IMG/VR virus record: IMGVR_UViG_3300042350_004528 | Location: 124,001-188,000 of that record | Direction: 5' to 3' (one strand) | DNA: 64,000 nt | Shown here: piece after piece, positions 4,576 to 38,189 of the stretch | Position numbering within the stretch: the first letter of the stretch is position 1 | Layout of the letters: every line of letters starts with the position of its first letter | Program-made: the position numbers and the translations under genes | The notes under the pieces: model-generated | The model's database searches: none | The model's input: only the letters and a program-made list of their open reading frames with translations | Told to the model about the DNA's origin: nothing

Positions 4576-4622
4576 TGCGTGTTTTTAATTTACGTTAAGA
4601 TATTTATATTAAAGTTTAACCA

Positions 4623-13384: not shown

Positions 13385-13412
13385 TTTTTTTAATAGTTAA
13401 TTTAGTAAATTT

Positions 13413-15428
13413 TTATTTTAATTCTATAAATCCGTTTTTATTTAAATTATTATAAAAATAATCTGGTGTTAAAATAATTTCTTTTACCTCAATAATTTGT
13501 TCTTTTTTTTCGTCTTTTTTATCAAAAAACAAACCTTTTATTTTATACGTTTTATTTTGAAAATCTATAATTTTATACCATCTATTATTACCATTTACGT
13601 TGATAGTTTCAATAAAGTTATCATCCATGTATAAATCCAATACTCTACTGTCGGTAGCGTTATTAACACTAAACCAAATGGCAAATTTACTAGGGTTATC
13701 TTTAACCGATAGTAAAGTAAAATATTCTACTCGAGAAAAATCATACCAATAAATTGTTTTACTAACCAAATCATCAAAATCTTTTTGCTTTTCATAAAAA
13801 ACTTTATTAGATACGGGTTTTAAACCATGAAACATCATATTTTCCAAAGAATTAGTTTCAGATCCCCAATCATACATAGCTTGTGTGTATTGTTCTTCTT
13901 TAAGTATGAGTGGAAAATGGTTGATGTAAAAATCAGGTTCAATTCCCATAAACCATGTTGTAACGGTTGGCCCCTCTTGATCCCCCTCCCTTAATTGACA
14001 ATAAATTTTATAATCATTTAATTTTTTAGAAACGTAGTCTAAAAAATACCTATCTTTAATTTCATAATCATAATTTAAAAAAAATACTTTTTTAAATCCT
14101 AAATTTTTAGCTAAACAAGCCCCATTGTAATAATTTGTATAGCAAGCGGGGCCGTGGTAAATATCATTCCCATACGCCTTTAAATTTACATGTGTGTAGT
14201 ATTCAGAATAATTCCAATACGAATAAGAATAAAAGGTATGTTTAGTTAATAAATTATTTTTATCAACCACAACATAATCTGCTGTTTCTTCTAAAATCTT
14301 GGGCACGGGTATGTGAGAAGTTAATATAACTTTCCTTCCCGATTTATGGGCGGATAATATACAATTTAAGGTTACTTCAATAACCCTTTGGGTATTTGGA
14401 TATGTGGAAATAACCACTACCTCTTCACTTTCATTTAAATACTCATTATTATTATTATTATTATTATTTAATAAATTTTTAATAGTTGTGTAATTATATT
14501 CAAAGTCATCAAATTTAAGATATTTTACTTTAGAAAATTCATCAAAATAATTTTCGTAAACGGGTAAATTATAAATTAGTGTTGGCAATTCCCAAGAAAT
14601 TGCTTCACGAATAACCAAAGGCATTGTTTCTTTATCGTTTACCGTACCTTTAGATGTAAATAAAAATAAATCCATTGCGGAATAAAATTTATCAACATCG
14701 GATCTTTCACCGTGGACAATTAAATTTTTGGGGATATTATTTAATAAAGGCTCCCAATAATATTTAAAATTGTCAGCGGTGTTTCCGACAGAATGAAACA
14801 TTATTTTTTCACCCTCAAACATCCTGGCGTATTCAAAAAATTCAGCTTGGTTTTTTCTTGGTGTGAATAAACCAACATGCAATACATGTTTATATTCAGG
14901 ATCCAATCCCAACTCTTTTAAAGAATTATAGCGGTCGGGTCTTTCTTTATATTCAATTGGGTATTCAACAACCTCAGAATCTATTTTTAGATCAGACAAC
15001 ATTTTACTTTGAAATTTTGACACCAAAATAAATTTATCTGGCATAAATCTTTTTGTATTAACGTCAAACGAGGAGTCATGTGACGTTTCAAATATTTTGT
15101 ATTGTCTTTCCTTTGTGTATATTTGTTCCGCAATATTATCAGCCATAAAATATTCTGGCATCTCCTCTAAATGAACTATATCGGGATTTAATCTTTGTAT
15201 GGTTTCGATTACAAATTGCTTATCCCCACCCCACGGAATGGTTAATAAATTATCACCGATTAAATTTTTTATTCTGTTTTTTTGAACCACTAAAACACCA
15301 CCAGTCACATCATCATATTCAATAACGTATATATTATAATTGTTTTTTAATTCCTCAATCTTTTTCGTTAGATATTGGGGTAAACCACCTGTTGATAGAT
15401 GTGGTGCAATATACAATATTGTTTTCAT
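13413..15428 (-). CDS. Multi-domain glycosyltransferase (GT4-like N-terminus plus a second, GT-A-like domain)
   Basis: PHLSTGGLPQY, HVGLFTPRKNQ, DLFLFTS..ETMPLVIREA. After an Asn8 linker comes a second domain VVVISTY...VILTSH...FFLNYDY. Confidence 0.8.
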   Translation of the reverse strand: MKTILYIAPHLSTGGLPQYLTKKIEELKNNYNIYVIEYDDVTGGVLVVQKNRIKNLIGDNLLTIPWGGDKQFVIETIQRLNPDIVHLEEMPEYFMADNIAEQIYTKERQYKIFETSHDSSFDVNTKRFMPDKFILVSKFQSKMLSDLKIDSEVVEYPIEYKERPDRYNSLKELGLDPEYKHVLHVGLFTPRKNQAEFFEYARMFEGEKIMFHSVGNTADNFKYYWEPLLNNIPKNLIVHGERSDVDKFYSAMDLFLFTSKGTVNDKETMPLVIREAISWELPTLIYNLPVYENYFDEFSKVKYLKFDDFEYNYTTIKNLLNNNNNNNNEYLNESEEVVVISTYPNTQRVIEVTLNCILSAHKSGRKVILTSHIPVPKILEETADYVVVDKNNLLTKHTFYSYSYWNYSEYYTHVNLKAYGNDIYHGPACYTNYYNGACLAKNLGFKKVFFLNYDYEIKDRYFLDYVSKKLNDYKIYCQLREGDQEGPTVTTWFMGIEPDFYINHFPLILKEEQYTQAMYDWGSETNSLENMMFHGLKPVSNKVFYEKQKDFDDLVSKTIYWYDFSRVEYFTLLSVKDNPSKFAIWFSVNNATDSRVLDLYMDDNFIETINVNGNNRWYKIIDFQNKTYKIKGLFFDKKDEKKEQIIEVKEIILTPDYFYNNLNKNGFIELK
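14445..14468. repeat. (ATT)8 microsatellite encoding Asn8 inter-domain linker
   Basis: Direct observation. Confidence 0.85.
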
Positions 15429-15475
15429 ACTTTTTTTTATTTTTAATAATAAGTAAAATTTATTTAAAAATAAAC

Positions 15476-15503
15476 AAAAAAGCCTAGAATATCTAGGCTT
15501 TTT
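15476..15503 (-). terminator. Intrinsic terminator after giant fibre gene
   Basis: AAAAAGCCTAGA-ATA-TCTAGGCTTTT, giving a U run on the minus strand. Confidence 0.8.
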
Positions 15504-15606
15504 CGCGTTTAAATTCGATAATAGTTAGATTTAAATTAATCTTACCTCATCGCCTGTTAGCTCAATGCGCGGATTGAGACTGTCTTTTGTGCCAAAGCAC
15601 AATTTC

Positions 15607-18600
15607 TTATGAAATTCTATGTCCATAGAAATAAGTCATTACTGTACCACCACCACCAACAATATCAGCATCACAACTTGCGAAGGTTCCTACGATAAGT
15701 CCATTACCAGTCCCGCGAACCCTAACCTCAATTTCTTGATCTGTTCCACCATCATTATAAACTACCGTATCAATATTCACTGTTTCAGGACAATCTGTTG
15801 AGGTTATATCGTAAATTGCAACTTTTAAATATGTTGCTGTTGTTACGTTGTAAAATGCAACGCTTGTATATGCCGTCCAATTGGCAAAACCAATTTGAGC
15901 TTGAATTTCCCAGGTTTCACCTGGTTGTATAACAAATCTATAACCATTAGCCGAAACATAACCTGTTACATCGTATTGTGTGGTATCAAATTGAACTGTT
16001 GTATCAGTATTTGCGGTTAGGTTTAAATCACTCTGTGCTAATGTAATTTGGAAATAATTACCGCCACCAGCTGATACACCTGATGTACCTGAAGATCCAG
16101 CTGCGCCCGTACCACCCGAAACACCTGATGTACCAGAAGAACCAGAAGTCCCTCTCGCCCCTGATGTACCAGAAGTTCCTGATGTACCAGAAGTTCCTGA
16201 AGAACCAGAAGTCCCTCTCGCCCCTGATGTACCAGAAGTTCCTGAAGAACCAGAAGTCCCTCTCGCCCCTGATGTACCAGAAGTTCCAGAAGTTCCTGAT
16301 GTACCACCACCACCACCACCACCTATGGTCGATACGGCTCGTAATGTTAAAAAATTATTTGTGACGTTGTCTACGGCTAAAACGTGAGTTGCGGCATTAT
16401 CAATTGGCGCAGTGACCTCAGTTTTACCAGCATTACCCCCCGAAAGTATGGTTTTAAACCCACTTACCGCCCCTACGTACACCCAATCAGTTAAAGCTGT
16501 AAGATCATTCCATACGAGATATGGGGCTTTTTGGCTTATAGCTGTCGCAGTTACGTTACTTAAATCAAAACTTAATGTCACATCACTGACTAATTGGCCG
16601 CCACCCGCCAAACCAACTCCCGAAATAACCGAAACATACGTTCCAGCGGTACCGAGATTACCTGAAATTCCTGATGTGCCAGATGTTCCTGATGTGCCAG
16701 ATGTTCCAGATGTTCCTGAAGAACCAGATGTTCCTGAAGAACCTGAGCCCGTTGAAGTTCCACTTGTTCCGATAGCACTATTACCAGATGTACCAGCGCT
16801 ACCAGAAGTTCCTGATGTTCCGCTTAATGCTGATATACCATTTAGTCCACTCACACCAGAAGTTCCTGTCGTACCAGAAGTTCCTGAAGAACCTGATGTT
16901 CCAGATGTGGCACTCACACCTGAAGTACCTGACGTTCCATTTCTTCCCGATGTTCCGAAGGAACCAGAAGTTCCTGATGTAGCACCTGTACTCACACCTG
17001 AAGTACCTGACGTTCCATTTCTTCCTGAAGTTCCGAAGGAACCAGAAGTACCCGATGTAACACCCGTACTCACACCTGATGTTCCAGATGTACCATTTCT
17101 TCCCGATGTTCCGAAAGCACCTGAAGTACCCGATGTAACACCCGTACTCACACCTGAAGTACCTGATGTACCATCTCTTCCTGAAGTTCCCGATGTTCCT
17201 GAAGAACCATTTGTTCCTGATGTTGCAGAAACACCACTTGTGCCAGCAGTTCCGTTTATTCCTGAAGTTCCAGAAGTTCCTGAAGAACCTGATGTTCCAG
17301 ATGTGGCACTCACACCTGATGTTCCAGATGTACCATCTCTTCCTGAAGTTCCGAACGCACCAGAAGTTCCCGATGTAACACCTGTACTCACACCTGAAGT
17401 ACCTGACGTTCCATTTCTTCCTGAAGTTCCGAAAGCACCTGAAGTTCCTGATGTAACACCCGTACTCACACCTGAAGTACCTGACGTTCCATTTCTTCCT
17501 GAAGTTCCGAAAGCACCTGAAGTACCTGATGTAACACCCGTACTCACACCTGAAGTACCTGATGTACCATCTCTTCCTGAAGTTCCGAAGGAACCAGAAG
17601 TTCCCGATGTCGCGGATATTCCCGATGTACCAGCAGTTCCGTTTATTCCTGAAGTTCCAGCTGTTCCTGAAGAACCTGATGTTCCCGATGTGGCACTCAC
17701 ACCTGAAGTACCTGACGTTCCATTTCTTCCTGAGGTTCCTGAAGAACCTGAAGTTCCTGATGTAGCAGAAACACCACTTGTTCCTGATGTTCCTGAAGAA
17801 CCAGAAGTACCGCTTGTCGCAGATACTCCCGATGTTCCAGCTGTACCATTTATTCCTGAGGTTCCCGAAGAACCTGATGTTCCTGAAGTTGCACTTATTC
17901 CTGAAGTTCCAGCTGTTCCTGAAGAACCAGAAGTACCTGATGTAGCGGATACTCCCGAAGTTCCAGCAGTTCCATTTCTACCCGAGGTTCCCGAAGATCC
18001 GCTTGTACCTGATGTTGCTGATACACCTGAAGTACCAGAAGTTCCCGATGATCCATTAGTTCCACTTGTTGCAGAAACACCCGAAGTTCCAGCAGTTCCA
18101 TTTATTCCTGATGTTCCTGACGATCCACTTGTACCTGAAGTACCTGATGTTCCGCTCGAACCAGAAGTACCTGATGTAGCGGATACTCCCGATGTTCCAG
18201 CAGTTCCATTTCTACCCGCAGTTCCACTTGAACCAGAAGTACCTGATGTTGCAGATACCCCACTTGTACCTGAAGTCCCGCTTGAACCAGCAGTTCCGCT
18301 TGTTGCTGATATACCTGAAGTTCCAGCAGTTCCATTTATACCTGAAGTTCCTGACGATCCGCTTGTACCAGAAGTACCAGCAGTTCCACTTGAACCAGAA
18401 GTTCCTGATGTTGCTGATATACCTGAAGTCCCAGCAGTTCCATTTCTACCCGAGGTTCCTGAAGAACCTGATGTTCCTGATGTTGCAGATACACCAGAAG
18501 TACCTGATGTTCCACTCGAACCAGAAGTTCCTGATGTAGCGGATACTCCCGATGTTCCAGCGGTTCCATTTATACCTGAAGTTCCTGACGATCCACTTGT

Positions 18601-21600
18601 ACCAGAAGTACCAGCAGTTCCACTTGAACCAGAAGTTCCTGATGTTGCTGATATACCTGAAGTACCAGCAGTTCCATTTCTACCCGAGGTTCCTGAAGAA
18701 CCTGATGTTCCACTTGTTGCTGATATACCTGATGTTCCACTTGAACCACTTGTTCCTGATGTTGCAGAAACACCACTTGTACCAGCAGTTCCATTTCTTC
18801 CTGAAGTACCTGAAGATCCACTTGTACCTGATGTTGCGGAAACGCCTGAGGTTCCCGAGGTTCCCGAAGAACCTGATGTACCACTTGTTGCAGAAACACC
18901 TGAAGTTCCGTTTATTCCTGATGTTCCCGATGAACCACTCGTTCCAGCAGTTCCAGAAGTTCCCGAAGATCCACTTGTACCTGATGTTGCAGATACACCT
19001 GAAGTTCCAGCAGTTCCATTTCTACCTGAAGTTCCACTTGAACCTGATGTACCTGATGTGGCAGATACTCCACTTGTTCCTGAAGAACCTGATGTTCCAC
19101 TTGTTGCTGATACACCTGAAGTTCCAGCAGTTCCATTTATTCCTGAGGTTCCTGAAGATCCACTTGTACCTGATGTCGCAGATACCCCACTTGTTCCTGA
19201 TGTACCTGAAGAACCAGAAGTCCCCGATGTCGCAGATACACCTGAAGTTCCAGCAGTTCCATTTCTTCCCGATGTACCTGAAGAACCAGAAGTTCCTGAT
19301 GTTGCAGATACCCCACTTGTTCCTGATGTTCCACTTGAACCTGATGTTCCACTTGTTGCTGATATCCCAGAGGTACCATTTATTCCCGATGTTCCACTTG
19401 AACCTGATGTTCCACTTGTTGCTGATATCCCAGAGGTACCAGCAGTTCCTGAAGAACCACTTGTACCGCTTGTCGCAGACACACCACTTGTTCCAGCAGT
19501 TCCGTTTCTACCTGAAGTTCCTGAAGAACCAGAAGTTCCTGATGTTGCAGATATCCCTGATGTTCCCGAGGTTCCTGAAGAACCTGATGTTCCACTTGTT
19601 GCTGATATCCCAGAGGTACCAGCAGTTCCGTTTATTCCAGAGGTTCCTGAAGAACCTGATGTTCCTGATGTTGCTGACACACCACTTGTTCCCGCAGTTC
19701 CCGAAGATCCACTTGTACCTGATGTTGCAGAAACACCTGAGGTTCCAGCAGTTCCATTTCTACCCGCAGTTCCCGAAGAACCCGATGTTCCTGATGTTGC
19801 AGATATCCCTGATGTTCCCGAGGTTCCTGAAGAACCAGAAGTTCCTGATGTTGCAGAAACACCTGAAGTACCAGCAGTTCCATTTATACCTGAAGTTCCT
19901 GACGATCCACTTGTACCAGAAGTACCAGCAGTTCCTGAAGAACCTGATGTACCACTTGTTGCAGAAACACCTGAGGTTCCAGCAGTTCCATTTCTACCCG
20001 AGGTTCCTGAAGAACCTGATGTACCTGATGTTGCAGACACTCCTGATGTACCAGCAGTTCCCGAAGAACCTGATGTTCCTGATGTCGCAGATACACCTGA
20101 AGTTCCAGCAGTTCCATTTATTCCTGAAGTTCCTGAAGAACCATTTGTTCCTGATGTCGCAGAAACACCACTTGTCCCTGATGTACCTGAAGAACCAGAA
20201 GTTCCTGATGTTGCTGATATTCCTGATGTACCAGCGGTTCCATTTCTACCTGAAGTACCTGAAGAACCACTTGTTCCTGATGTTGCTGAAACTCCCGAAG
20301 TACCAGAAGTTCCAGAGGAACCTGATGTTCCTGAAGTTGCACTTATTCCTGAAGTACCAGCCGTACCGTTTATTCCCGAAGTACCTGACGATCCACTTGT
20401 ACCAGAAGTACCTGATGTTCCGCTCGAACCAGAAGTTCCTGATGTTGCGGATACACCTGAAGTTCCAGCAGTTCCGTTTATTCCAGAGGTTCCTGAAGAA
20501 CCTGATGTTCCTGATGTTGCAGATATTCCACTTGTACCAGCTGTACCTGAAGAACCTGAAGTTCCGCTTGTTGCTGATATCCCTGAAGTCCCAGCAGTTC
20601 CATTTCTACCTGAGGTACCACTTGAACCACTCGTTCCCGATGTAGCGGATACACCACTTGTCCCTGATGTACCTGAAGAACCAGCAGTTCCACTTGTTGC
20701 AGAAACACCTGAAGTTCCAGCAGTTCCATTTATTCCTGAAGTTCCTGAAGAACCTGAAGTTCCTGAAGTTGCACTTATTCCTGAAGTTCCAGCTGTTCCT
20801 GAAGAACCTGATGTTCCTGATGTGGCACTTATTCCTGAAGTTCCAGCAGTTCCATTTCTACCCGAGGTTCCTGAAGATCCAGAAGTACCTGATGTTGCAG
20901 AAACACCTGATGTACCTGAAGTACCTGAAGAACCACTTGTTCCCGATGTTGCAGAAACACCTGATGTACCAGCGGTTCCATTTATTCCTGATGTTCCCGA
21001 TGAACCAGAAGTTCCGCTTGTTGCGGATGTACCTGATGTTCCAGCAGTACCACTTGAACCAGAAGTACCTGATGTTGCAGAAACACCTGATGTACCTGAG
21101 GTTCCATTTCTACCAGCTGTTCCTGAAGAACCCGATGTCCCACTTGTAGCGGATACACCACTTGTTCCAGCTGTACCTGAAGAACCTGATGTACCTGATG
21201 TCGCAGATATACCTGATGTTCCAGCAGTTCCATTTCTACCAGCTGTTCCTGAAGAACCCGATGTCCCACTTGTAGCGGATACTCCACTTGTTCCTGATGT
21301 TCCTGAAGAACCAGAAGTTCCTGATGTTGCTGATGCACCTGAAGTTCCAGCGGTACCATTTATTCCTGAAGTTCCCGATGATCCATTTGTACCAGCCGTA
21401 CCAGAAGTGCCAGAAGATCCACTTGTTCCGCTTGTTGCGGATATACCTGATGTTCCAGCAGTTCCATTTATACCTGAAGTTCCAGAAGAACCAGAAGTTC
21501 CGCTTGTTGCAGATATTCCTGATGTTCCAGCGGTACCATTAATACCTGATGTACCAGCTGTTCCTGAAGAACCAGAAGTTCCGCTTGTTGCAGATATTCC

Positions 21601-24600
21601 TGAAGTCCCAGCAGTTCCGTTTCTACCAGAAGTACCTGAAGAACCAGAAGTACCTGATGTTGCAGAAACACCTGATGTTCCCGAGGTTCCTGAAGAACCA
21701 GAAGTACCTGATGTGGCGGATACACCTGAAGTCCCAGCAGTTCCATTTATTCCTGATGTTCCACTTGAACCTGATGTACCTGATGTCGCAGAAACACCAC
21801 TTGTTCCTGATGTTCCACTTGAACCAGAAGTACCCGATGTCGCAGACACACCTGATGTTGCTGATACCCCCGATGTACCTGATGTTCCGCTCGATCCACT
21901 TGTTCCTGATGTTGCAGAAACACCACTTGTTCCAGCTGTACCTGAAGAACCTGAAGAACCTGATGTTCCTGATGTTGCAGATATTCCACTTGTACCAGCA
22001 GTTCCATTTCTACCTGAGGTACCACTTGAACCACTCGTTCCCGATGTTGCGGATACTCCACTTGTTCCTGATGTTCCCGAAGAACCAGAAGTTCCTGATG
22101 TTGCTGAAACACCTGATGTACCAGAAGTTCCATTTATTCCTGAAGTTCCCGATGAACCACTTGTACCAGCAGTACCTGAGGTTCCTGAAGAACCAGAAGT
22201 ACCTGATGTTGCGGATATTCCTGAAGTTCCAGCAGTTCCATTTATTCCAGCTGTTCCTGAAGAACCATTTGTTCCTGATGTCGCAGATACACCTGAAGTC
22301 CCCGCAGTTCCACTTGAACCAGAAGTTCCCGATGTTGCTGATATCCCTGAAGTTCCAGCAGTTCCGTTTCTTCCTGAGGTTCCTGAAGAGCCCGATGTTC
22401 CTGATGTAGCAGAAACACCACTTGTTCCCGCAGTTCCCGAAGAACCCGATGTTCCTGAGGTTGCTGAAACACCCGATGTTCCAGCTGTACCATTTATTCC
22501 AGATGTTCCTGAAGAACCTGATGTTCCTGAAGTTGCTGATACACCCGATGTTCCACTTGTTCCCGAAGAACCTGATGTTCCTGAGGTTGCTGAAACACCC
22601 GATGTTCCAGCTGTACCATTTATTCCTGAGGTTCCTGAAGAACCTGATGTCCCACTTGTAGCGGACACACCACTTGTTCCCGCAGTTCCTGAAGAACCAG
22701 AAGTACCTGATGTTGCTGAAACACCCGATGTTCCAGCTGTACCATTTATTCCTGAAGTTCCAGAGGAACCTGATGTTCCTGAAGTTGCTGATATTCCTGA
22801 AGTACCAGCTGTTCCTGAAGAACCAGAAGTTCCGCTTGTTGCGGATATTCCTGAAGTTCCAGCAGTTCCGTTTCTTCCTGAGGTTCCTGAAGAACCAGAA
22901 GTACCTGATGTTGCCGATACTCCCGATGTTCCTGAGGTTCCTGAAGAACCTGATGTTCCTGATGTAGCAGAAACACCTGATGTACCAGCTGTACCATTTA
23001 TCCCCGAAGTTCCCGCAGTTCCCGAAGAACCTGATGTTCCTGATGTTGCAGAAACACCACTTGTTCCAGCTGTACCTGAAGAACCTGATGTTCCACTTGT
23101 TGCCGATATTCCTGATGTACCAGAAGTTCCATTTCTTCCTGAAGTACCTGAAGAACCACTTGTTCCTGATGTTGCTGAAACACCACTTGTTCCAGCTGTA
23201 CCTGAAGAACCAGATGTACCTGATGTTGCGGAAACACCTGATGTTCCAGCGGTTCCGTTTATTCCTGATGTTCCACTTGAACCAGAAGTACCTGATGTTG
23301 CAGATACCCCACTTGTACCTGAAGTCCCGCTTGAACCAGCAGTTCCGCTTGTTGCTGATATACCTGAAGTTCCAGCAGTTCCATTTCTACCTGATGTTCC
23401 ACTTGAACCCGATGTACCTGATGTTGCAGATACTCCTGAAGTTCCAGCAGTACCACTTGAACCTGATGTACCTGATGTGGCAGACACACCACTTGTACCA
23501 GCAGTTCCATTTCTTCCTGATGTTCCACTTGAACCTGATGTTCCTGATGTTGCAGACACTCCTGATGTACCTGAGGTTCCTGAAGATCCACTTGTACCTG
23601 ATGTTGCTGATATCCCCGAAGTTCCAGCAGTTCCATTTATTCCTGATGTACCTGAGGTTCCACTTGAACCCGATGTTGCAGACACACCTGATGTGCCTGA
23701 GGTTCCCGAAGAACCTGATGTACCTGATGTCGCAGATATACCTGATGTTCCAGCAGTTCCATTTATTCCTGAAGTACCTGAAGATCCGTTTGTACCTGAT
23801 GTTGCGGAAACACCTGAGGTTCCCGAGGTTCCCGAAGAACCCGATGTTCCTGATGTGGCAGACACACCACTTGTACCAGCAGTTCCATTTCTTCCCGATG
23901 TACCTGAAGTTCCGCTTGAACCAGCAGTACCGCTTGTCGCAGATACTCCACTTGTACCAGCAGTTCCGTTTATTCCTGATGTTCCAGCAGTACCACTTGA
24001 ACCTGATGTACCTGATGTTGCAGACACTCCTGATGTTCCAGCAGTACCATTTATTCCTGAAGTACCCGAAGATCCGTTTGTACCAGCAGTCCCTGAAGTC
24101 CCCGAAGATCCACTTGTACCTGATGTCGCTGATGCCCCTGAAGTTCCAGCGGTTCCGTTTATTCCTGATGTTCCACTTGAACCAGATGTTCCACTTGTTG
24201 CCGATATCCCTGATGTACCAGCGGTTCCATTTCTACCTGAAGTACCACTTGAACCTGATGTACCTGATGTTGCAGAAACACCTGATGTACCTGAAGTTCC
24301 ATTTATCCCTGATGTGCCTGAAGTACCGCTTGAACCTGATGTTCCTGATGTTGCAGACACTCCTGAAGTTCCTGATGTTCCCGAAGAACCAGAAGTTCCT
24401 GATGTTGCAGACACTCCTGAAGTTCCTGATGTTCCATTTATTCCTGATGTTCCACTTGAACCTGATGTACCTGATGTGGCAGATACTCCTGAAGTTCCCG
24501 AAGTACCTGAAGAACCAGATGTACCTGATGTTGCGGAAACACCTGATGTTCCAGCGGTTCCGTTTATTCCTGATGTTCCACTTGAACCAGATGTTCCTGA

Positions 24601-27600
24601 TGTGGCGGATACACCCGAAGTTCCCGAAGTACCTGAAGAACCAGAAGTTCCTGATGTCGCAGATACCCCACTTGTACCAGCGGTTCCATTTATTCCTGAT
24701 GTTCCACTTGAACCTGATGTTCCTGATGTGGCAGATACTCCACTTGTACCAGAGGTACCACTTGAACCCGATGTACCTGATGTTGCAGATACTCCACTTG
24801 TACCAGCAGTTCCGTTTATTCCTGAAGTACCTGAAGATCCACTTGTACCTGATGTTGCTGATATACCTGAAGTTCCAGCAGTTCCATTTCTACCAGCTGT
24901 ACCTGAAGATCCTGATGTTCCACTTGTCGCAGATACCCCACTTGTACCAGCGGTTCCATTTATTCCTGATGTTCCAGAAGAACCTGATGTTCCTGATGTG
25001 GCAGATACACCCGAAGTTCCTGAAGTTCCACTTGAACCCGATGTTCCTGATGTGGCAGACACACCACTTGTACCAGCAGTTCCGTTTATTCCTGATGTTC
25101 CAGCAGTACCACTTGAACCTGATGTACCTGATGTTGCAGACACACCACTTGTTCCAGCAGTTCCATTTCTACCAGCGGTTCCACTTGAACCATTTGTTCC
25201 AGATGTTGCAGATACCCCTGAAGTTCCTGATGTTCCGTTTATTCCCGAAGTTCCTGAAGAACCTGATGTTCCTGATGTTGCGGAAACACCTGAAGTTCCC
25301 GATGTTCCATTTCTACCTGATGTTCCCGAAGAACCTGAGGTTCCTGAAGAACCATTTGTTCCCGATGTTCCACTTATTGCTGATATACCATTTAATCCAT
25401 CAATACCCGATGTACCAGTTGAACCACTTGTTCCTGATGTTGCAGATACACCTGATGTTCCAGCACTCCCACTTCTACCTGATGTTCCCGAAGAACCTGA
25501 GGTTCCTGAAGAACCATTTGTTCCCGATGTTCCACTTATTGCTGATATACCATTTAATCCATCAATACCCGATGTACCAGTTGAACCAGAAGTTCCACTT
25601 GTCGCAGACACTCCTGATGTTCCAGCAGTACCATTTCTTCCTGAGGTTCCCGAAGAACCTGAGGTTCCACTTGTTGCAGATACTCCACTTGAACCTGATG
25701 TACCTGATGTCGCAGATACTCCCGATGTACCAGAGGTACCCGATGTTCCTGAAGAACCAGAAGTTCCAGATGTTGCAGAAACACCTGATGTTCCCGATGT
25801 TCCTGAAGAACCTGATGTTCCTGATGTGGCAGACACACCACTTGTACCAGCAGTTCCATTTATTCCTGATGTTCCCGAAGAACCAGATGTACCTGATGTT
25901 GCCGATATACCTGAAGTTCCAGCGGTACCATTTATTCCAGATGTTCCATTGGAACCACTTGTTCCCGATGTCGCAGACACACCTGAAGTCCCAGCGGTTC
26001 CATTTCTCCCCGATGTTCCACTTGAACCTGATGTTCCACTTGTAGCGGATACTCCCGATGTACCAGCAGTACCGTTTATTCCTGAAGTACCTGAAGAACC
26101 ATTTGTTCCAGATGTGGCAGATACTCCACTTGAACCAGCAGTACCGCTTGTCGCAGATACTCCACTTGTTCCCGAGGTTCCTGAAGACCCAGACGTTCCT
26201 GATGTTGCAGATACACCTGATGTTCCAGCACTCCCACTTCTACCTGATGTTCCCGAAGAACCTGATGTTCCTGATGTCGCAGACACACCTGAAGTTCCAG
26301 AGGTTCCGTTTATTCCCGATGTACCTGAAGAACCAGATGTCCCTGATGTTCCACTTATCGCTGATGTACCAGCAGTACCGTTTATTCCTGAAGTACCTGA
26401 AGAACCATTTGTTCCAGATGTGGCAGACACACCTGAAGTTCCTGATGTTCCATTTATTCCTGATGTACCTGATGAACCACTTGTACCAGCAGTTCCACTT
26501 ATCGCTGATGTACCAGCAGTACCATTTATTCCCGAAGTTCCTGATGACCCAGAAGTTCCTGATGTTGCCGATATTCCCGAAGTTCCTGATGTTCCATTTA
26601 TTCCTGATGTACCTGATGAACCACTTGTTCCTGATGTCGCAGACACACCACTTGTACCAGCAGTTCCATTTGAACCTGATGTTCCTGATGTTGCTGATAT
26701 CCCAGAAGTACCTGATATCCCAGAAGTACCTGATGAACCACTTGTACCAGCAGTTCCATTTCTTCCTGAGGTTCCGCTTGAGCCAGAAGTTCCTGAAGTT
26801 CCACTCTCACCTGAAGTTCCCGAAGAACCTGAAGTTCCTGAAGAACCACTTGTACCGCTTGAACCAGAAGTTCCCGAAGAACCTGAAGTATTCGATTCAC
26901 CTGATGTACCAGCACCACCTGATGTTCCAGCAGTACCACCTGTTCCCGAGGTTCCAGCCTGGGATGTACTTGTTCCAGATGTACCAGCACCACCTGATGT
27001 TCCAGAAGTACCACCTGTTCCCGAGGTTCCAGCCTGGGATGTACTTGTTCCAGATGTACCAGCACCACCTGATGTTCCAGCAGTACCACCTGTTCCCGAG
27101 GTTCCACTTATTGCTGATATACCATTTAATCCATCAATACCCGATGTACCAGTTGAACCAGAAGTTCCTGATGTTGCTGATATCCCCGAAGTTCCAGCAG
27201 TTCCATTTCTACCTGATGTTCCACTTGAACCAGAAGTTCCTGATGTTGCTGATATCCCTGATGTACCAGAGGTACCCGATGTTCCTGAAGAACCATTTGT
27301 TCCGCTTGTCGCCGATACCCCTGATGTTCCCGAAGAACCCGAAGTTCCAGCAGTTCCTGAAGAACCATTTGTTCCCGATGTCGCAGATATCCCACTTGTT
27401 CCCGATGTTCCATTTATTCCTGATGTACCTGAAGATCCACTTGAACCTGATGTACCTGATGTGGCAGATACACCTGATGTTCCAGCGGTTCCATTTATTC
27501 CTGAAGTCCCCGAAGATCCACTTGTTCCAGCAGTACCTGATGTACCCGAAGAACCCGATGTTCCCGAAGATCCGCTAGATCCTGAAGTCCCCGAACTTCC

Positions 27601-30600
27601 GCTTGAGCCAGAAGTACCTGATGTTCCTGAACTCCCCGAACTTCCGCTTGAGCCAGAAGTACCTGATGTTCCTGATGTTGCGGAAACACCTGATGTACCA
27701 GCGGTTCCATTTCTTCCTGAAGTTCCGCTTGAACCAGAAGTTCCAGATGTTGCAGAAACACCTGAAGTTCCATTTAATCCTGATGTTCCCGAAGAACCTG
27801 ATGTTCCCGAAGAACCTGATGTTCCCGAAGAACCTGATGTACCAGTAGTTCCTGATGTACCTGAAGAACCTGAGGTTCCAGAAGAACCTGATGTTCCCGA
27901 AGAACCTGACGTACCTGATGTCGCAGATATTCCAGAAGTACCTGAAGTTCCAGATGATCCACTTTCACCCGATGTTCCCGAGGTTCCAGACGTTGCGGAA
28001 CCACCACTCTCACCCGCTAGTCCATTAACACCCGAAGTACCTGAAGAACCTGATGTTCCTGATGTTGCGGAAATGCCTGAAGTACCACTTGTACCGTTTG
28101 AGCCTGATGTTCCAGAAGTACCTGAAGACCCAGACGTTCCCGAAGAACCACTTGTCCCATTTGTACCCGATTCACCTGAAGTACCTGAAGACCCAGACGT
28201 TCCTGAAGTTCCATTTGTTCCTGATTTACCTGAAGACCCAGACGTTCCTGAAGTTCCACTTTCGCCAGAAGTTCCTGAAGTTCCATTTGTTCCTGATTCA
28301 CCTGATGTTCCCGAAGAACCACTTGTACCACTTGTTCCAGAAGAACCATTTGTACCATTTGTTCCAGATGTTCCACTTTCACCAGAAGTTCCCGAAGTTC
28401 CACTTTCACCCGAAGTTCCTGAAGAACCTGATGTACCTGATGTTGCAGATATCCCTGATGTTCCCGAAGAACCATTTGTACCACTTTCACCTGAACTTCC
28501 ACTTTCACCCGAACTTCCACTTGTGCCAGAAGTTCCCGAACTTCCACTTGAACCTGATGTACCTGAACTTCCACTTTCACCCGAAGTACCGTTTGTACCA
28601 CCCTCACCCGAAGTTCCATTTGTTCCTGAAGTTCCCGAAGTTCCACTTATTGCTGATATACCATTTAATCCATCAATACCCGATGTACCAGTTGAACCAG
28701 AAGTTCCTGATGTTGCTGATATACCTGAAGTTCCAGCAGTTCCATTTATTCCCGATGTTCCACTTGAACCAGAAGTTCCCGAAGAACCATTTGTACCAGA
28801 AGTTCCCGAAGAACCATTTGTACCACTTTCACCTGAAGTACCGTTTGTACCCGACTCACCAGATGTCCCTGATGTTCCCGATGTACCTGAAGAACCAGAT
28901 GTTCCTGATGTTCCTGAAGAACCATTTGTACCGCTCTCACCTGAACTTCCGCTTGAACCAGAAGAACCTGATGTTCCACTTGAGCCAGAAGAACCTGATG
29001 TTCCACTTGAGCCAAATGTTCCTGAGGTTCCAGAAGAACCATTTGTACCACTCTCACCTGAACTTCCACTCTCACCCGAAGTTCCTGAGGTTCCAGAAGA
29101 ACCTGATGTTCCACTTGAACCAGAAGTACCCGATGTTCCCGAAGAACCATTTGTACCACTTTCACCTGAAGTACCACTTTCACCCGAACTTCCACTTGAA
29201 CCAGAAGTACCTGATGTTCCTGAAGAACCAGAAGTACCTGATGTTCCTGAAGTACCGTTTGTACCACTTTCACCTGAAGTACCACTTTCACCCGATGTTC
29301 CTGAGGTTCCTGATGTACCTGAGGAACCACTTGTTCCAGAAGTTCCCGATGTTCCCGAAGAACCATTTGTACCACTTTCACCTGAAGTACCACTTTCACC
29401 TGAAGAACCCGAAGTTCCTGATGTACCTGAGGAACCACTTGTACCTGAAGTTCCAGATGATCCACTTTCACCCGATGTGCCTGAAGTTCCAGAAGTTGCG
29501 GAACCACCACTCTCACCCGCTAGTCCATTAACACCCGAAGTTCCTGAAGAACCAGAAGTTCCCGAAGAACCCGATGTCCCTGAAGTTGCTGAAAAACCTG
29601 AAGTACCGTTTGTACCCGACTCACCCGAAGTTCCCGAAGTTCCCGAAGAACCTGATGTTCCCGATGTTCCCGAAGAACCCGATGTCCCTGAAGTTGCTGA
29701 AAAACCTGAAGTACCATTTGTGCCCGACTCACCCGAAGTTCCTGAAGTTCCTGAAGAACCCGATGTCCCAGAAGTTCCTGAAGAACCCGATGTTCCTGAA
29801 GTTCCACTTTCACCTGAAGTACCGTTTGTACCCGACTCACCCGATGTTCCCGATGTTCCCGATGTACCTGAGGAACCACTTGTTCCCGAAGAACCCGAAG
29901 AACCTGATGTTCCTGAAGTTCCATTTGAACCTGATGTTCCTGAAGTTCCACTTTCACCCGAAGTTCCACTTGAGCCAGAAGTACCTGAGGAACCACTTGT
30001 TCCCGAAGAACCTGAAGAACCTGATGTACCTGATGTTCCTGAAGAACCATTTGTACCACTCTCACCTGAAGTACCACTCTCACCCGAAGAACCTGATGTT
30101 CCTGATGTTCCAGATGATCCACTTGTACCTGATGTTCCTGATGTTCCCGAAGAACCATTTGTCCCTGACTCACCTGAAGTACCGTTTGTTCCCGACTCAC
30201 CAGATGTCCCCGATGTCCCCGATGTACCTGATGAACCAGAAGTTCCCGAAGAACCAGATGTCCCTGATGTTCCGTTTGTTCCAGATTCACCATTTGTACC
30301 ATTTTCACCAGACGTTCCTGAAGTTCCTGAAGTTCCGCTTGTTCCTGATGTTCCTGAAGAACCAGAAGTACCTGATGTTCCGTTTGTTCCAGATTCACCA
30401 TTTGTACCATTTTCACCAGACGTTCCTGAAGTTCCTGAAGTTCCGCTTGTTCCTGATGTTCCTGAAGAACCAGACGTTCCTGAAGTTCCTGAAGTTCCGC
30501 TTGTTCCAGATTCACCATTTGTACCATTTTCACCCGAAGTTCCTGAAGAACCAGAAGTTCCCGAAGAACCAGAAGTTCCCGAAGTTCCACTTGTACCCGA

Positions 30601-31557
30601 TGTACCAGACGTACCGTTTGTCCCACTTTCACCCGATGTTCCTGATGTTCCTGTTGTCCCCGATGTTCCTGATGTGCCAGATGTGCTTGGCAACACCATA
30701 TATTTGTCAATTCTTTTTGCTACGATTATAACAGAGGGCGCCGCTGGATAATTAACCCCAGCCCCTAAAGCTGTTATTTGTACATGTTGATTTGTGGATA
30801 AAAATACAAACTCAACACAATCATTAGCTTGTAAATTAAATTGATATGCAACAAATGGTAATTGATATGCGCCATTTCCGCTTAATGTTATAGTTGATGT
30901 TGTCCTGGGCTCGTCATTGCCATTAATTCTTGCCCAAATTATAATATCAGTACCGTTTGCATTTGATGCGGCTTCAATTTGAGCTGAATATCCTATTTCA
31001 TAAACACCAGCATTATCTACGGTAATTTGTGAATTATTTTGTACACTAATGCCATTTGCAATTTCGGTTGTATTATATTCCCAAACGGTTGGTATACTTG
31101 AACCACTGACTACTTGTGTGGTTGAATCACTAAACGACCCATAATAATTATCTCCAGTCCACGAAGTACCAGATGAACCTGCTGTTCCCGAAGTACCAGT
31201 AGTTCCTGATGTACCTGAAGAACCAGAAGTTCCCGACTCACCAGATGTCCCCGATGTACCTGAGTAACCAGATGTTCCTGAGGTACTAGCGGCGGAATAT
31301 GTGAATTGACCCGTTAGCGGATCAAATGTTACGACATATTGCGGATTTAATTCTTGAGTTAATTCCTGATTAACCCAATTACTACCATTATAAACTAAAA
31401 TACTACCAGCTGTTGCGCCAGTTGTTATTATTACATCAGTTAGGTCATCCAGACCTAAGTTCTCAATTGCATTTTTTAGATTATCAAAATTCGCGTCAAG
31501 TTCGCCGAATGTTAAAGGTCTACCTAGTGCGCATCTTAAATATATTGTAACCGCCAT
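15607..31557 (-). CDS. Giant (5316 aa) Gly-X-Y Ser/Thr-rich collagen-like fibre protein with C1q/BclA-like globular domains
   Basis: N-terminus [21 protein letters not shown] resembles phage fibre attachment segments. Beta-sandwich at about aa 135-285 (YYGSF...[11 protein letters not shown]). About 4700 aa of period-3 [19 protein letters not shown]-terminal beta domain (TTVQFDT..YD...RFVIQ). TATTTAT upstream. Confidence 0.85.
16660..30690 (-). repeat. About 14-kb period-9-nt coding repeat (Gly-X-Y triplets) with synonymous variation
   Basis: Plus strand is built of units such as GTTCCTGAT, GTTCCTGAA, GAACCAGAA, GTACCTGAT. Confidence 0.95.
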
Positions 31558-31558
31558 T

Positions 31559-31604
31559 TATTATCGAAATTTAAACTACTTATAAATAGTCCAAATTCCG
31601 ATAA
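31559..31604 (-). promoter_or_regulatory. Hairpin covering the fibre gene translation start, with TATTTAT motif in its loop
   Basis: Minus strand TTATCGGAATTT-ggactatttataagtagttt-AAATTTCGATAA-taa-ATG. Confidence 0.65.
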
Positions 31605-31607
31605 TGT

Positions 31608-34064
31608 CTAACTCAATTTTACGAAAATTTTGTCTTTTTTCGAATCATATGTTATGTTAAACGCCCCTTCAGATGGCATACCGTGTTGTAATAGTTCCTC
31701 AGACATGGGATCTTCAACATATTTTTGAATTGTTCGATTCAATTCTCTCGCACCATATTTTCTATCATAACCAAGCTCAGCTAACTTTTCTTTCGCTTGT
31801 GTTGTTATTTTAAAAGTGTAATTTGACTCAAACAATCTTTCGGATAAATCATCCAATTGAATATCAATTATCTTTAAAATATCATCTTTACTCAAGTAAT
31901 TAAAATAAACTAATTCATCAAGACGATTTAAAAACTCTGGTTTAAAAAATTTACGAAGACTTTTTTCGATAATATCTTGGGCAGATTTTGTTGGATCTTC
32001 ATCAGTCGAAAAGCCAATTTTTGTACCAAAATCTTGTACATCTTTTAAACCAATATTTGACGTCATAATAATAATGGTATTTTTGAAATTAATTTTTCTA
32101 CCACTACCATCTGTTAAATGACCTTCATCCAATAATTGTAATAAAACGTTAAAGATATCTGGATGAGCCTTTTCAATTTCATCAAAAAGTATGAGCGAAT
32201 ATGGTTTATTCTTAACTTTTTCAGTTAACTGTCCGCCTTCATTGTATCCAATATATCCTGGAGGCGCACCAATTAATTTTGAAATGTTAAATTTTTCACC
32301 ATACTCTGACATGTCAACTCTAATCATAGCATCCTGGCTACCAAAAACTTTTTCAGCTAACATTTTTGCTAACTCTGTTTTACCAACACCCGTTGGGCCA
32401 ATGAATAAAAATGAACCAATTGGTTTATTTTGTTTTCTAATACCAGTGCGATTTCTTTTTATTGCAGATGAAATTTTTTGAATCGCTTCATTTTGGCCAA
32501 TAATTGTGTTAGACAATTCAGTATCTATCGTTAACAATTTTTTAATCTCGTTTTGTGAAATTTTTGTAATTGGTATCCCAGTCATAAGCGAAACAACCTC
32601 ACAAACCATTTCATCATTAACAACCATTCTTTTATTGTCGATATTTTCTTTCCAAATTCGAGTTTCTTTTTCTAACTCAGCTGTTGTTTTCTTTTCTAAA
32701 TCCCTCAAATCAGCGGCCAGTTCAAACTTTTGGCTTTTAACAACTTCTTGTTTTCTTTTTTTAATTTCCTTTATCTCGTTTTCGAGTTCTTTAATTTTTT
32801 GTGGGGCTTTAATACTAACTTGTGTTCGAGAGCCAGCTTCATCCATTATGTCAATTGCTTTATCTGGAAATTCTCGATTTGTGATATATCGATCAGCTAA
32901 TCTAATAATCTCGTTGATCGCATCATCGGTATACTCAACTTTATGAAAATCTTCGTACTTTTCACGAATATTCATTAAAATATCCTTTGTTTGTTCAAGT
33001 GTTGGTGGGTTCACCATTACTTTTTGAAAACGTCTATCCAAAGCACCATCCTTTTCAATATGCTCACGATATTCATCCAAAGTTGTAGCACCAATACATT
33101 GCACCTCACCACGAGCCAAAGCTGGTTTAAATACATTAGCGGCGTCTAACGCACCAGATGAATTTCCAGCACCAACAAGGGTGTGTAATTCATCCACAAA
33201 AAGAATGATGTTTGGGTTATCTCTAACTTCCTCAAGCAAAGCTTTAATTCTCTCTTCGAATTGACCGCGATACTTGGTTCCAGCAACCATTGATGTTAAA
33301 TCAAGAGTAACCAATCTTTTATTTTGTAAAGGCCTTGGACATTCATCCATGGCGATTTTAATCGCAAGACCTTCAGCGATTGCTGTTTTACCAACACCAG
33401 GGTCGCCAATTAAAACTGGGTTGTTCTTTTTTCTTCTTGATAAGACTTGAGCAACTCTTTCTACCTCACTATCTCTCCCAATAACAGGATCTAATTTACC
33501 CTCATTGGCTAAAGCGGTTAAATCCCGACTAAAATTATCTAAAATTGGCGTTCTAGATTTGTTTTTAGATGGTGCATTTTCACTTTGGGAACTTTTTTTA
33601 TTTTGATCTTCCTCGCTAAAATAGTTTGACGAAACATTTAATTGCTTTAAACGTCTTTGTATAAATGTTTTTGTGACACCATAATCTTTAATTATTTTAA
33701 TTACGGCAATATCTATATCAAATGAAGTTGTAAAAAATAACTCTGGTGTGATAAACTCATCCTTTTTTTTATTTTTAATACAAAGTTTAATCACTTCTTG
33801 AAGCTCTGGCTCAAAAGTTAAAATTGATTCTGAATTTATATTATCATCGTTTTCCGACTGTTGTTTGTTTATATTTTGAATATCCTGAACAAGCAGATCG
33901 AAATCTTTGATTTTATTTTTCAAAATCTCGTTTATAATATTATCTGATATGATTATTCCATATAATACATGCTCTATTCTTAACTTAGTATCTCTGTAAT
34001 TAACCGCACTTTCCCTACCAATCGCAAAAGCTTGTCGCAACTCATTTGTCATTTTATCATTCAT
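31608..34064 (-). CDS. clpC: ATP-dependent Clp protease ATPase subunit (ClpC-like)
   Basis: Clp N domain, LDPVIGR, GDPGVGKT, AGTKYRGQFEER, UVR-type coiled coil (FELAADLRD), second NBD GPTGVGKTE, GYNEGGQLTE, GARELNR. Confidence 0.93.
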   Translation of the reverse strand: MNDKMTNELRQAFAIGRESAVNYRDTKLRIEHVLYGIIISDNIINEILKNKIKDFDLLVQDIQNINKQQSENDDNINSESILTFEPELQEVIKLCIKNKKKDEFITPELFFTTSFDIDIAVIKIIKDYGVTKTFIQRRLKQLNVSSNYFSEEDQNKKSSQSENAPSKNKSRTPILDNFSRDLTALANEGKLDPVIGRDSEVERVAQVLSRRKKNNPVLIGDPGVGKTAIAEGLAIKIAMDECPRPLQNKRLVTLDLTSMVAGTKYRGQFEERIKALLEEVRDNPNIILFVDELHTLVGAGNSSGALDAANVFKPALARGEVQCIGATTLDEYREHIEKDGALDRRFQKVMVNPPTLEQTKDILMNIREKYEDFHKVEYTDDAINEIIRLADRYITNREFPDKAIDIMDEAGSRTQVSIKAPQKIKELENEIKEIKKRKQEVVKSQKFELAADLRDLEKKTTAELEKETRIWKENIDNKRMVVNDEMVCEVVSLMTGIPITKISQNEIKKLLTIDTELSNTIIGQNEAIQKISSAIKRNRTGIRKQNKPIGSFLFIGPTGVGKTELAKMLAEKVFGSQDAMIRVDMSEYGEKFNISKLIGAPPGYIGYNEGGQLTEKVKNKPYSLILFDEIEKAHPDIFNVLLQLLDEGHLTDGSGRKINFKNTIIIMTSNIGLKDVQDFGTKIGFSTDEDPTKSAQDIIEKSLRKFFKPEFLNRLDELVYFNYLSKDDILKIIDIQLDDLSERLFESNYTFKITTQAKEKLAELGYDRKYGARELNRTIQKYVEDPMSEELLQHGMPSEGAFNITYDSKKDKIFVKLS

Positions 34065-34086
34065 AATCTTACTGTAATTTTTTTTG

Positions 34087-34117
34087 CAAATCTAAGCAAA
34101 ATCTTGACACAATGCAA
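34087..34117 (-). promoter_or_regulatory. Bacteroidota-type promoter of clpC
   Basis: Minus strand TTG-N20-TAGATTTG, 22 nt upstream of the ATG. Confidence 0.65.
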
Positions 34118-34150
34118 CTTTTTACCTAAATTTATCAAAAATAAATATCC

Positions 34151-34369
34151 ATGGATACAATTATAATAAATTTAACCAACGGATCGGTAAAAACGTATAC
34201 CGATATCTACAATACTATTATAAGTGGTAATCATTTGATTATAACCACAAAAACCACGGTTAAAAGCGAAGGTAATCATTTTGTTCTCACAGCAAATGAT
34301 GTTTTTGACCTAAAAAATATTATAAATTACACAACAAAGATAAAAACAATAAAATATGGTGAAGAGTAA
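34151..34369 (+). CDS. Hypothetical protein
   Basis: 72-aa ORF overlapping the next gene. Confidence 0.6.
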   Translation: MDTIIINLTNGSVKTYTDIYNTIISGNHLIITTKTTVKSEGNHFVLTANDVFDLKNIINYTTKIKTIKYGEE

Positions 34370-38156: not shown

Positions 38157-38189
38157 ATAAAGTAATCTATTTATAATTAAATAAGATTT

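Follow-up and report, generated by a model that had tools for sequence, protein, structure and literature searches.

We found that the spacer in front of a giant collagen-like fibre gene of an uncultured jumbo phage forms a single RNA hairpin that takes up the leader immediately before the start codon, and that the apex of this hairpin carries a promoter-like motif. The gene lies in the window, a stretch of 64,000 nucleotides (nt) that corresponds to bases 124001-188000 of the 298,833-base-pair (bp) IMG/VR virus record IMGVR_UViG_3300042350_004528 (rated complete, 34% G+C). Additionally, the 3' untranslated region (UTR) of the same gene contains a 17-nt element complementary to the leader 16 kb away, and it is possible, if unproven, that the two pair functionally in promoter-proximal transcripts. 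In window coordinates, the features concerned are:

15607..31557, minus strand: giant collagen-like fibre gene, a single open reading frame (ORF) of 5316 amino acids (aa), assigned by Pfam Collagen and PHROG tail-fibre families
31586..31605, minus strand: ascending (5') arm of the hairpin, ATTATCGGAATTTGGACTAT, from RNAfold and covariation in seven lineages
31580..31585, minus strand: hairpin loop TTATAA, 6 nt, from the fold and the alignment
31560..31579, minus strand: descending (3') arm of the hairpin, GTAGTTTAAATTTCGATAAT, which spans -3 to -22 relative to the AUG and contains most of the leader segment 31576-31559
31582..31589, minus strand: promoter-like motif CTATTTAT in the hairpin apex (end of the 5' arm plus loop), invariant in all seven lineages
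15507..15523, minus strand: 3' element TATTATCGAATTTAAAC, within the best-conserved non-coding block

The whole 50-nt spacer between the upstream clpC gene and the fibre gene folded into one 20-bp RNA hairpin (31605-31560, minus strand), for which RNAfold gave -21.1 kcal/mol with four G.U pairs and a helix ending 2 nt ahead of the AUG. The spacer was aligned from seven lineages, namely the window and the relatives G001, G002, L297, L298, L299 and L300, whose ClpC proteins were approximately 76-88% identical to that of the window (exact values for five of the six). The spacer was predicted to fold into a hairpin in all seven lineages (-10 to -23 kcal/mol), and, as evident from the alignment, 92.8% of the hairpin cells were paired, a proportion that fell to 29-54% when the partner was slid by one to three columns. 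In particular, six pairs were altered on both sides; the CGATAAT end, for example, became AGTAAT in L297 and AACAA in L300, each matched on the opposite arm, and the covariation score was above those of all 500 shuffles. Among the 22 cells that were not Watson-Crick pairs, 12 were G.U, and a helix in sense-strand RNA therefore fits the data, whereas a DNA palindrome does not. We regard the local leader hairpin as established with little room for doubt. No terminator-like site was found in the spacer, where the hairpin is without a U tract, and Rfam held no family for either the leader hairpin or the 3' element.

The motif in the apex belongs to a class of sites that recurs in this genome. We found [AC]TATTTAT to be enriched on the sense strand of upstream regions; the sense and antisense counts upstream of genes were 16 vs 5 for CTATTTAT and 30 vs 13 for ATATTTAT. 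About half of the sites (25) began 20-30 nt ahead of the ATG, and an A/T followed by AAA was found at +5 to +7 downstream of them. A longer candidate phage promoter consensus, [AG][AC]TATTTAT-N4-AAA, could be written from sites such as those at 2411-2434, 4599-4622 and 38166-38189 of the window. The head maturation protease gene carries the motif, and this one late gene is the basis on which the sites are tentatively assigned to a late temporal class. An internal promoter within the fibre hairpin is likely. By analogy with T4, we infer that its transcript would start at approximately 31578-31575, and this predicted start coincides with position 31576, the first base of the segment that is complementary to the 3' UTR.

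A strong hairpin enclosed only 2 of the 49 promoter sites. Apart from the fibre gene, this arrangement was found at G000:C1:292598-293992 (minus strand; outside the window), a 464-aa gene whose N-terminus, MSLILRNNLPRPLSHTELDGNL, is similar to that of the fibre; its CTATTTAT sits inside a hairpin of -19 kcal/mol whose 3' arm includes the ATG. No 3' mimic was found for this second gene. Two other upstream signals were observed in the genome: a separate host-type motif (AAATTTGC / TAnnTTTG) is sense-enriched and mostly lies 50-60 nt upstream, and a palindromic ATATTTATAGATAAATAT at G000 86563-86597 is common to two divergent genes.

The gene upstream of the hairpin could supply a second kind of fibre transcript.

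31608..34064, minus strand: clpC/clpB-like AAA+ chaperone gene, 818 aa (Pfam AAA_2, AAA_lid_9, ClpB_D2-small)

This gene adjoins the fibre gene on its upstream side, and its ATG is preceded by a host-type (Bacteroidota-like) promoter, TTG-N20-TAGATTTG (TTG-N20-TAnnTTTG), which matches the Bacteroidota type of promoter (consensus cited in PMC6847099). Among RNA-library contigs, one of 270 nt agrees with the window at every base over 31527-31796 and thus covers the 3' end of clpC, the hairpin and the ATG. Because this contig covers the clpC-fibre junction, read-through RNA from clpC probably exists, a possible carry-over of DNA into the RNA library being a point on the other side. The source of the window is a 299-kb T4-like jumbo phage, since its relatives encode a gp23-type capsid protein, an S77 prohead protease and a tail sheath protein. 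The nearest cellular homologues of its ClpC were Bacteroidota ClpC proteins (approximately 51% identity), its host is probably a member of the Bacteroidota, and the DNA runs that contain the phage are lake or freshwater metagenomes. Shine-Dalgarno sequences were missing from the genes of this phage, including the fibre leader.

These features suggest a mechanism in which one arm of the hairpin is used twice. On read-through RNA from clpC, the helix would bury the 20 nt immediately ahead of the AUG, and the fibre gene would stay untranslated, because the host probably does without Shine-Dalgarno pairing and tunes initiation by leader structure; because of the hairpin, early transcripts thus probably yield no fibre protein. 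Those initiated at the internal promoter would begin at approximately 31576, lack the ascending arm and present a free 19-nt leader that could be translated. The 3' element would be the sole partner for this leader, since the ascending arm is absent from such transcripts. It could then re-form the masking helix, either in cis on the completed 16-kb message, as a panhandle, or in trans through a stable 3'-UTR fragment, and by either route it would feed back on fibre synthesis. The combined proposal, in which internal-promoter transcripts lack the ascending arm and have their leader masked again by the 3' copy (in cis or through a 3'-UTR fragment), is a tentative model to which we give slightly less than an even chance of being right. 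Whereas the hairpin with its covariation, the genome-wide placement of the motif and the conservation described below were read directly from the genomes, we infer the transcription start, the translational block and any pairing over a long range or in trans.

A panhandle that masks the start region had been proposed in the first-pass annotation for full-length transcripts. The complementarity on which that proposal was built is real. However, the leader is already paired locally as the 3' arm of the 20-bp hairpin; in transcripts that contain the ascending arm, the local helix would therefore form first and not the 16-kb panhandle, and a role for the 3' element thus requires transcripts that start inside the hairpin, at the apex motif. 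A bolder version of the model, that the 16-kb mRNA senses its own completion, appears doubtful to us. According to this version, the first 18 nt of the late transcript would stay free, and be translated, only up to the point at which the polymerase enters the final 40 nt ahead of the terminator; the mimic made there would then close the message or accumulate as a 3'-UTR fragment. If true, completion sensing would meter the output of a very costly 5316-aa fibre, and would represent a prokaryotic closed-loop mRNA that re-uses one arm of a T4-style temporal hairpin.

The leader segment GTTTAAATTTCGATAATA (31576-31559, minus strand), which a single A separates from the fibre ATG (31557-31555), pairs with the 3' element (15523-15507, minus strand) over 17 bp with one bulged U on the leader side, just as the first-pass annotation had described. 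The element resembles the ascending arm with its wobble Gs replaced by As and with one base fewer, which makes it a Watson-Crick partner for the descending arm; at the same time, it is a direct repeat of the ascending arm at 14/17 positions. The pair has a local-alignment score of 15, which was reached in 0.03% of 20,000 trials with dinucleotide-shuffled versions of its sequences (P=0.0003). When real 53-nt leaders were combined with 120-nt tails of other genes from the same 298.8-kb genome, the score was reached in 0.26% of 40,000 sampled pairs (P=0.0026). RNAduplex energy was discarded as a measure of significance, as 16% of random pairs reached -18.9 kcal/mol or better. The element was not a dispersed repeat; the genome holds only three copies, all at the fibre gene, and near-matches within three edits numbered 43 compared with approximately 30 in random genomes. 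Scans of IMG/VR DNA with patterns for either motif returned only the lineages already known, among random matches.

The surroundings of the 3' element were compared among relatives, for which the following features are needed:

15587..15602, minus strand: 3' UTR hairpin 1, TTGTGC-TTTG-GCACAA; stem kept and loop changed in L294
15561..15578, minus strand: 3' UTR hairpin 2, CTCAAT-CCGCGC-ATTGAG; stem kept and five to six loop bases changed in L294
15527..15542, minus strand: 3' UTR hairpin 3, AGATT-AATTTA-AATCT; stem kept and loop changed in L294
15468..15506 (stem 15506-15474), minus strand: intrinsic terminator, a 15-bp stem followed by a T run, with an A tract ahead; stem conserved in L294 and G002, with loop changes
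13413..15428, minus strand: glycosyltransferase gene, 671 aa (Pfam Glycos_transf_1), the first member of a glycosyltransferase cluster downstream of the fibre gene

Both small hairpins that had been noted earlier (TTGTGC/GCACAA and CTCAAT/ATTGAG) are present, together with the third one (AGATT/AATCT). The terminator at 15506-15474 follows the 3' element directly and was the strongest terminator-like site in 15200-34300. It could act bidirectionally, because an A tract precedes and a T tract follows the stem. Identical terminator stems (GAAAAAGCCTAG...CTAGGCTTTTTT) were also seen in many unrelated metagenome contigs. As a further candidate role, the 3' element was considered as the 5' arm of a hairpin reaching from the terminator to the glycosyltransferase leader, which was rejected as only AAAC/GTTT pairs.

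We found the 3' element, together with the terminator, in two further lineages, L294 and G002. In L294, whose glycosyltransferase was 58% identical, the entire 3' UTR was homologous; the three hairpin stems, the 17-nt element (17/17) and the terminator stem were unchanged, and substitutions were confined to loops and linkers. G002, with a glycosyltransferase of 51% identity, contains a complete 4627-aa fibre gene with a different C-terminal domain. Here, only 7 nt lie between the stop codon and the 3' element, the remaining 3' UTR is gone, and the element plus terminator is still the best-conserved non-coding stretch. The 17-nt element was kept as well as the terminator stem, while the spacer past the terminator had diverged.

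The element of G002 was identical at 15/17 positions. One of its changes turns a U-A pair into C-G, matching a T-to-C change in the leader of the same genome, and the other gives a G.U pair; the element of G002 thereby forms 17 pairs with its own leader around the same bulge. If two substitutions were placed at random, pairing would stay complete in 0.65% of cases, rising to 1.5% with transition bias. In both genomes, the window and G002, the 3' element was closer to the complement of the 3' arm than to the 5' arm. The cognate duplexes between leader and 3' UTR were predicted at -16.3 and -19.0 kcal/mol. The complementarity has therefore been retained in G002, the only relative with both gene ends, contrary to the case foreseen in the earlier annotation in which relatives would not conserve it, and the match rises above chance because it is kept in a relative. 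These findings weakly support the long-range pairing.

Several observations weigh against the re-masking of the leader by the 3' element. Both gene ends are known in only two lineages, the window and G002, because collagen repeats break the assemblies, and the long-range covariation amounts to one double change; of the other contigs, L297-L300 and L336-L339 contain the leader but not the 3' end, L292-L295 the reverse, and a metagenome scan anchored on the terminator gave 35 loci, of which two were relevant (the window type and the L294 type), both ending within repeats. The leader change of G002 is equally accounted for by the local hairpin, where it converts G.U to G-C. Non-cognate combinations of leader and 3' UTR were predicted at -16.1 and -16.3 kcal/mol, nearly as stable as the cognate ones. 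In the predicted fold of the 3' UTR, the stem of hairpin 3 is lengthened by CGATGAGG pairing with the first half of the 3' element, such that half of the element is paired locally. Related fibre genes in L300, L292, L293 and L295 were without the 3' element, and the hairpin is independent of it, since a hairpin persists both in L300 and at the second hairpin-gated gene although neither carries the element. In addition, the late promoter class and the spacing from motif to start are taken from T4 by analogy. Finally, the 3' end appeared in no listed RNA run, and no RNA contigs were found on 13400-16100 in three metatranscriptomes, in which the phage was present at very low coverage. The idea of a processed 3'-UTR RNA in the first-pass annotation fits the anatomy, in which a putative single-stranded seed lies directly ahead of an intrinsic terminator.

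The number of genes scanned belongs on the same side of the balance. With the null of real pairs, 0.9 same-gene pairs of this quality were expected among 355 and one was observed (0.1-0.9 per genome across the shuffle and real-pair nulls), and same-gene pairs of leaders and tails as a class were not more complementary than random pairs. After counting the scan over all genes, the match alone is compatible with chance. The earlier annotation had itself cautioned that the match is AT-rich and that chance could account for it. Pure chance would mean that an AT-rich 17-mer happens to recur and that shared ancestry explains its presence in relatives. A 15-nt perfect complement of the leader, located within a coding gene at G000 283974 and taken as fortuitous rather than as a functional site, illustrates that such matches do arise. 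Against this explanation stand the shuffle P value, the preservation of the element (15/17 in G002 and 17/17 in L294) amid diverged or replaced non-coding DNA, and the compensatory changes of G002. We consider pure chance a slim prospect.

The main rival, and a serious one, is that the 3' copy is a relic of recombination. The element would then have no function in RNA-RNA pairing. It would derive from the hairpin arm, by duplication or by being dragged along in an exchange of fibre cassettes, and would owe its survival solely to its tight linkage with a terminator that is required. This explanation fits well with the position of the gene, as the gap between clpC and the glycosyltransferase gene is clearly a variable fibre slot. 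Across relatives, its contents varied from 0 to 5316 aa of differing genes: no gene in the 321-kb phage L137, genes of 594 and 121 aa in the P0147 contig, a 1272-aa gene in L300, and in other relatives collagen genes of 3,200 to 5,300 aa whose C-terminal domains differ between lineages, trailed in some cases by extra genes of 228 and 90 aa (the relatives with a variable slot being L137, L292, L293, L295, L300 and the P0147 contig). It also fits that the element and the terminator are conserved as one block next to sequence that has been replaced, and that the 14/17 similarity to the ascending arm places direct repeats on both sides of the cassette. T4-type phages are known to recombine at conserved promoter/terminator cassettes, the promoter-early stem-loops (PeSLs) (PMC2839356, PMC4122927). 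However, the element is not dispersed, with three copies and near-matches at the random rate (approximately 30), and it was kept like the terminator stem while the spacer behind the terminator diverged. Moreover, both changes in G002 are neutral or compensatory for pairing, and in both genomes the element tracks what the 3' arm would pair with, not the 5' arm that it would have been copied from. A deletion junction of the form predicted by a relic was looked for in L137 and was not seen. On this evidence, we judge a relic to be less likely than the preferred reading, though the likeliest of the rivals.

The fibre protein itself has an N-terminal anchor domain and a globular C-terminal domain, with approximately 4,800 aa of collagen-like G-X-Y (GTS/GSS) repeats, nearly the whole of the protein, between them. 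A first query with the C-terminal 227 aa was swamped by collagen repeats, and a refined C-terminal query gave no match in contigs G001-G004; a search with the full-length protein returned one giant collagen protein only, in an unrelated gene context. Antisense to the gene, a 4779-aa open frame was observed at 16412-30751 (plus strand), along with several other long antisense ORFs. These are likely artefacts of the repeats and not genes, because repeats of the GGT-ACT-TCT type are free of stops in several frames. RNA-library contigs of 90-95% identity stacked on a short GTS repeat at 31163-31254, near the 5' end of the gene; they derive from other collagen-like genes of the community rather than from this phage, as they continue into dissimilar sequence.

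The same pairing could serve a purpose other than re-masking. It would tie the 5'-terminal 18 nt of the promoter-proximal transcript to the 3' UTR, and could thereby shield a very long mRNA from decay that depends on its 5' or 3' end. The duplex would start at, or no more than 2 nt from, the predicted first nucleotide, and the three conserved hairpins and the strong terminator of the 3' UTR are typical stabilisers; in the hbs mRNA of B. subtilis, an interaction of the 5' and 3' UTRs controls the access of ribonuclease (PMC5737220). However, the duplex reaches to 2 nt before the AUG and should block initiation in a host that needs an unstructured leader (PMC6847099). End protection therefore appears improbable to us, although slightly less so than chance.

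Unlike these explanations, all of which concern RNA or its ancestry, the first-pass annotation had also offered an inverted repeat that acts at the level of DNA around a swappable module. The inverted copies of 17-18 bp bracket the gene nearly exactly, and they could be sites for one DNA-binding protein or crossover sites for inversion of the 16-kb segment. The findings have weakened this alternative. Serine (PF00239) and tyrosine (PF00589) recombinases were absent from a genome rated 100% complete, in a search in which the controls gave matches. In one DNA run (X1), no alternative junction was found at the 3' repeat, the only one covered, among assembled contigs, from which rare variants are lost. 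G.U pairs are tolerated in the local hairpin, whereas the C.A mismatches that they would give on the opposite strand are not, which points to a function in RNA for this family of sequences, and inversion would part the gene from its promoter. Site-specific inversion was rejected as unlikely on the first two grounds, and we consider a DNA-level element very improbable, well below each of the other rivals. The preferred reading remains an RNA hairpin with an internal start site, to which the 3' element may add a second masking partner.

Additional differences from relatives were observed around the fibre locus. ClpC homologues in P0149, P0195, P0196, P0206 and P0208 were 1077-1201 aa long and showed Hom_end/LAGLIDADG-type Pfam matches, which suggests inteins inserted in the phage clpC. 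The thymidylate synthase of the window (36374-37411) is one 345-aa ORF, while that of L300 (6330-8659) comprised three separate Thymidylat_synt ORFs with other ORFs interspersed, as though an intron, homing endonuclease or intein had divided the gene. A Laminin_G_3 (concanavalin-like) gene was present once in the window (34640-36325, plus strand) vs four tandem paralogues in L298 (3660-9435).

Upon comparison with known systems, PeSL cassettes, which mediate modular shuffling in T4-type phages (PMC2839356, PMC4122927), resemble the fibre locus in that a hypervariable slot, with different genes in different relatives, is flanked by small conserved regulatory sequences. In contrast, PeSLs occur as many dispersed direct copies, and each combines a terminator stem-loop with an early host-type promoter, whereas here three copies belong to one gene, the motif is of the phage type and no U tract follows the hairpin. 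Dispersal and the union of terminator and host-type promoter, by which PeSLs are defined, are not found at this locus. If the 3' element is a relic, it marks a recombination boundary of the hypervariable fibre slot and would be useful for understanding the exchange of host-range modules.

Base pairing between the 5' and 3' UTRs of one mRNA is known from icaR of Staphylococcus aureus (PMC3868564). The likeness is that the 3' UTR includes a segment complementary to the initiation region of its own mRNA, with repression predicted. However, icaR is short and its 3' UTR carries an anti-Shine-Dalgarno motif, whereas the ends of the fibre message lie 16 kb apart and its leader has no Shine-Dalgarno sequence; additionally, the pairing proposed here from sequence would compete with or replace a local hairpin. 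OppZ and CarZ of Vibrio cholerae are small RNAs (sRNAs) derived from 3' UTRs that repress their own operon (PMC7398697). The fibre gene shares this arrangement, as the putative seed (15523-15507) abuts the terminator (15506-15474) and has its complement in the initiation region of the same unit (31576-31559), and a logic of negative feedback would follow. OppZ and CarZ are released by RNase E and require Hfq, and a fibre 3'-UTR fragment is hypothetical. Bacteroidota are generally not known to encode Hfq. A functional 3' mimic would be the first case in a phage of communication between 5' and 3' UTRs or of autoregulation derived from a 3' UTR, across 16 kb, and would provide a simple, testable model for dosing very long and costly structural genes.

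The closest parallel to the hairpin is found in the T4 genes e (lysozyme), soc, 49 and I-TevI, whose early read-through transcripts are silent while late transcripts that start within the 5' strand of the helix are translated (PMC3014915). As in T4, on transcripts that enter from an upstream gene expressed earlier, the helix (here 20 bp, seen as structure only) would sequester the initiation region, and a phage-type promoter-like motif lies in or near the 5' strand, such that internal transcripts without that strand, which are predicted here, would be translatable. The phage is itself T4-like, as judged from its gp23 capsid protein and prohead protease. The T4 promoter motif is TATAAATA vs [AC]TATTTAT here, where the starts are predicted. 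In contrast to T4, there is no Shine-Dalgarno sequence to hide; what the helix occludes is an A/U-rich leader as far as position -3. The 3' end of the fibre message also has a further copy of the 5' strand, which T4 lacks. Flavobacterium tunes initiation through the structure of the leader and not through Shine-Dalgarno pairing (PMC6847099), and a leader helix would be effective with initiation of this type. The leader hairpin would extend the T4 logic of a promoter inside an inhibitory hairpin to a distant, uncultured jumbo phage, probably of freshwater Bacteroidota, with a different promoter motif and no Shine-Dalgarno sequences, and [AC]TATTTAT is offered as a candidate phage promoter consensus for this clade.

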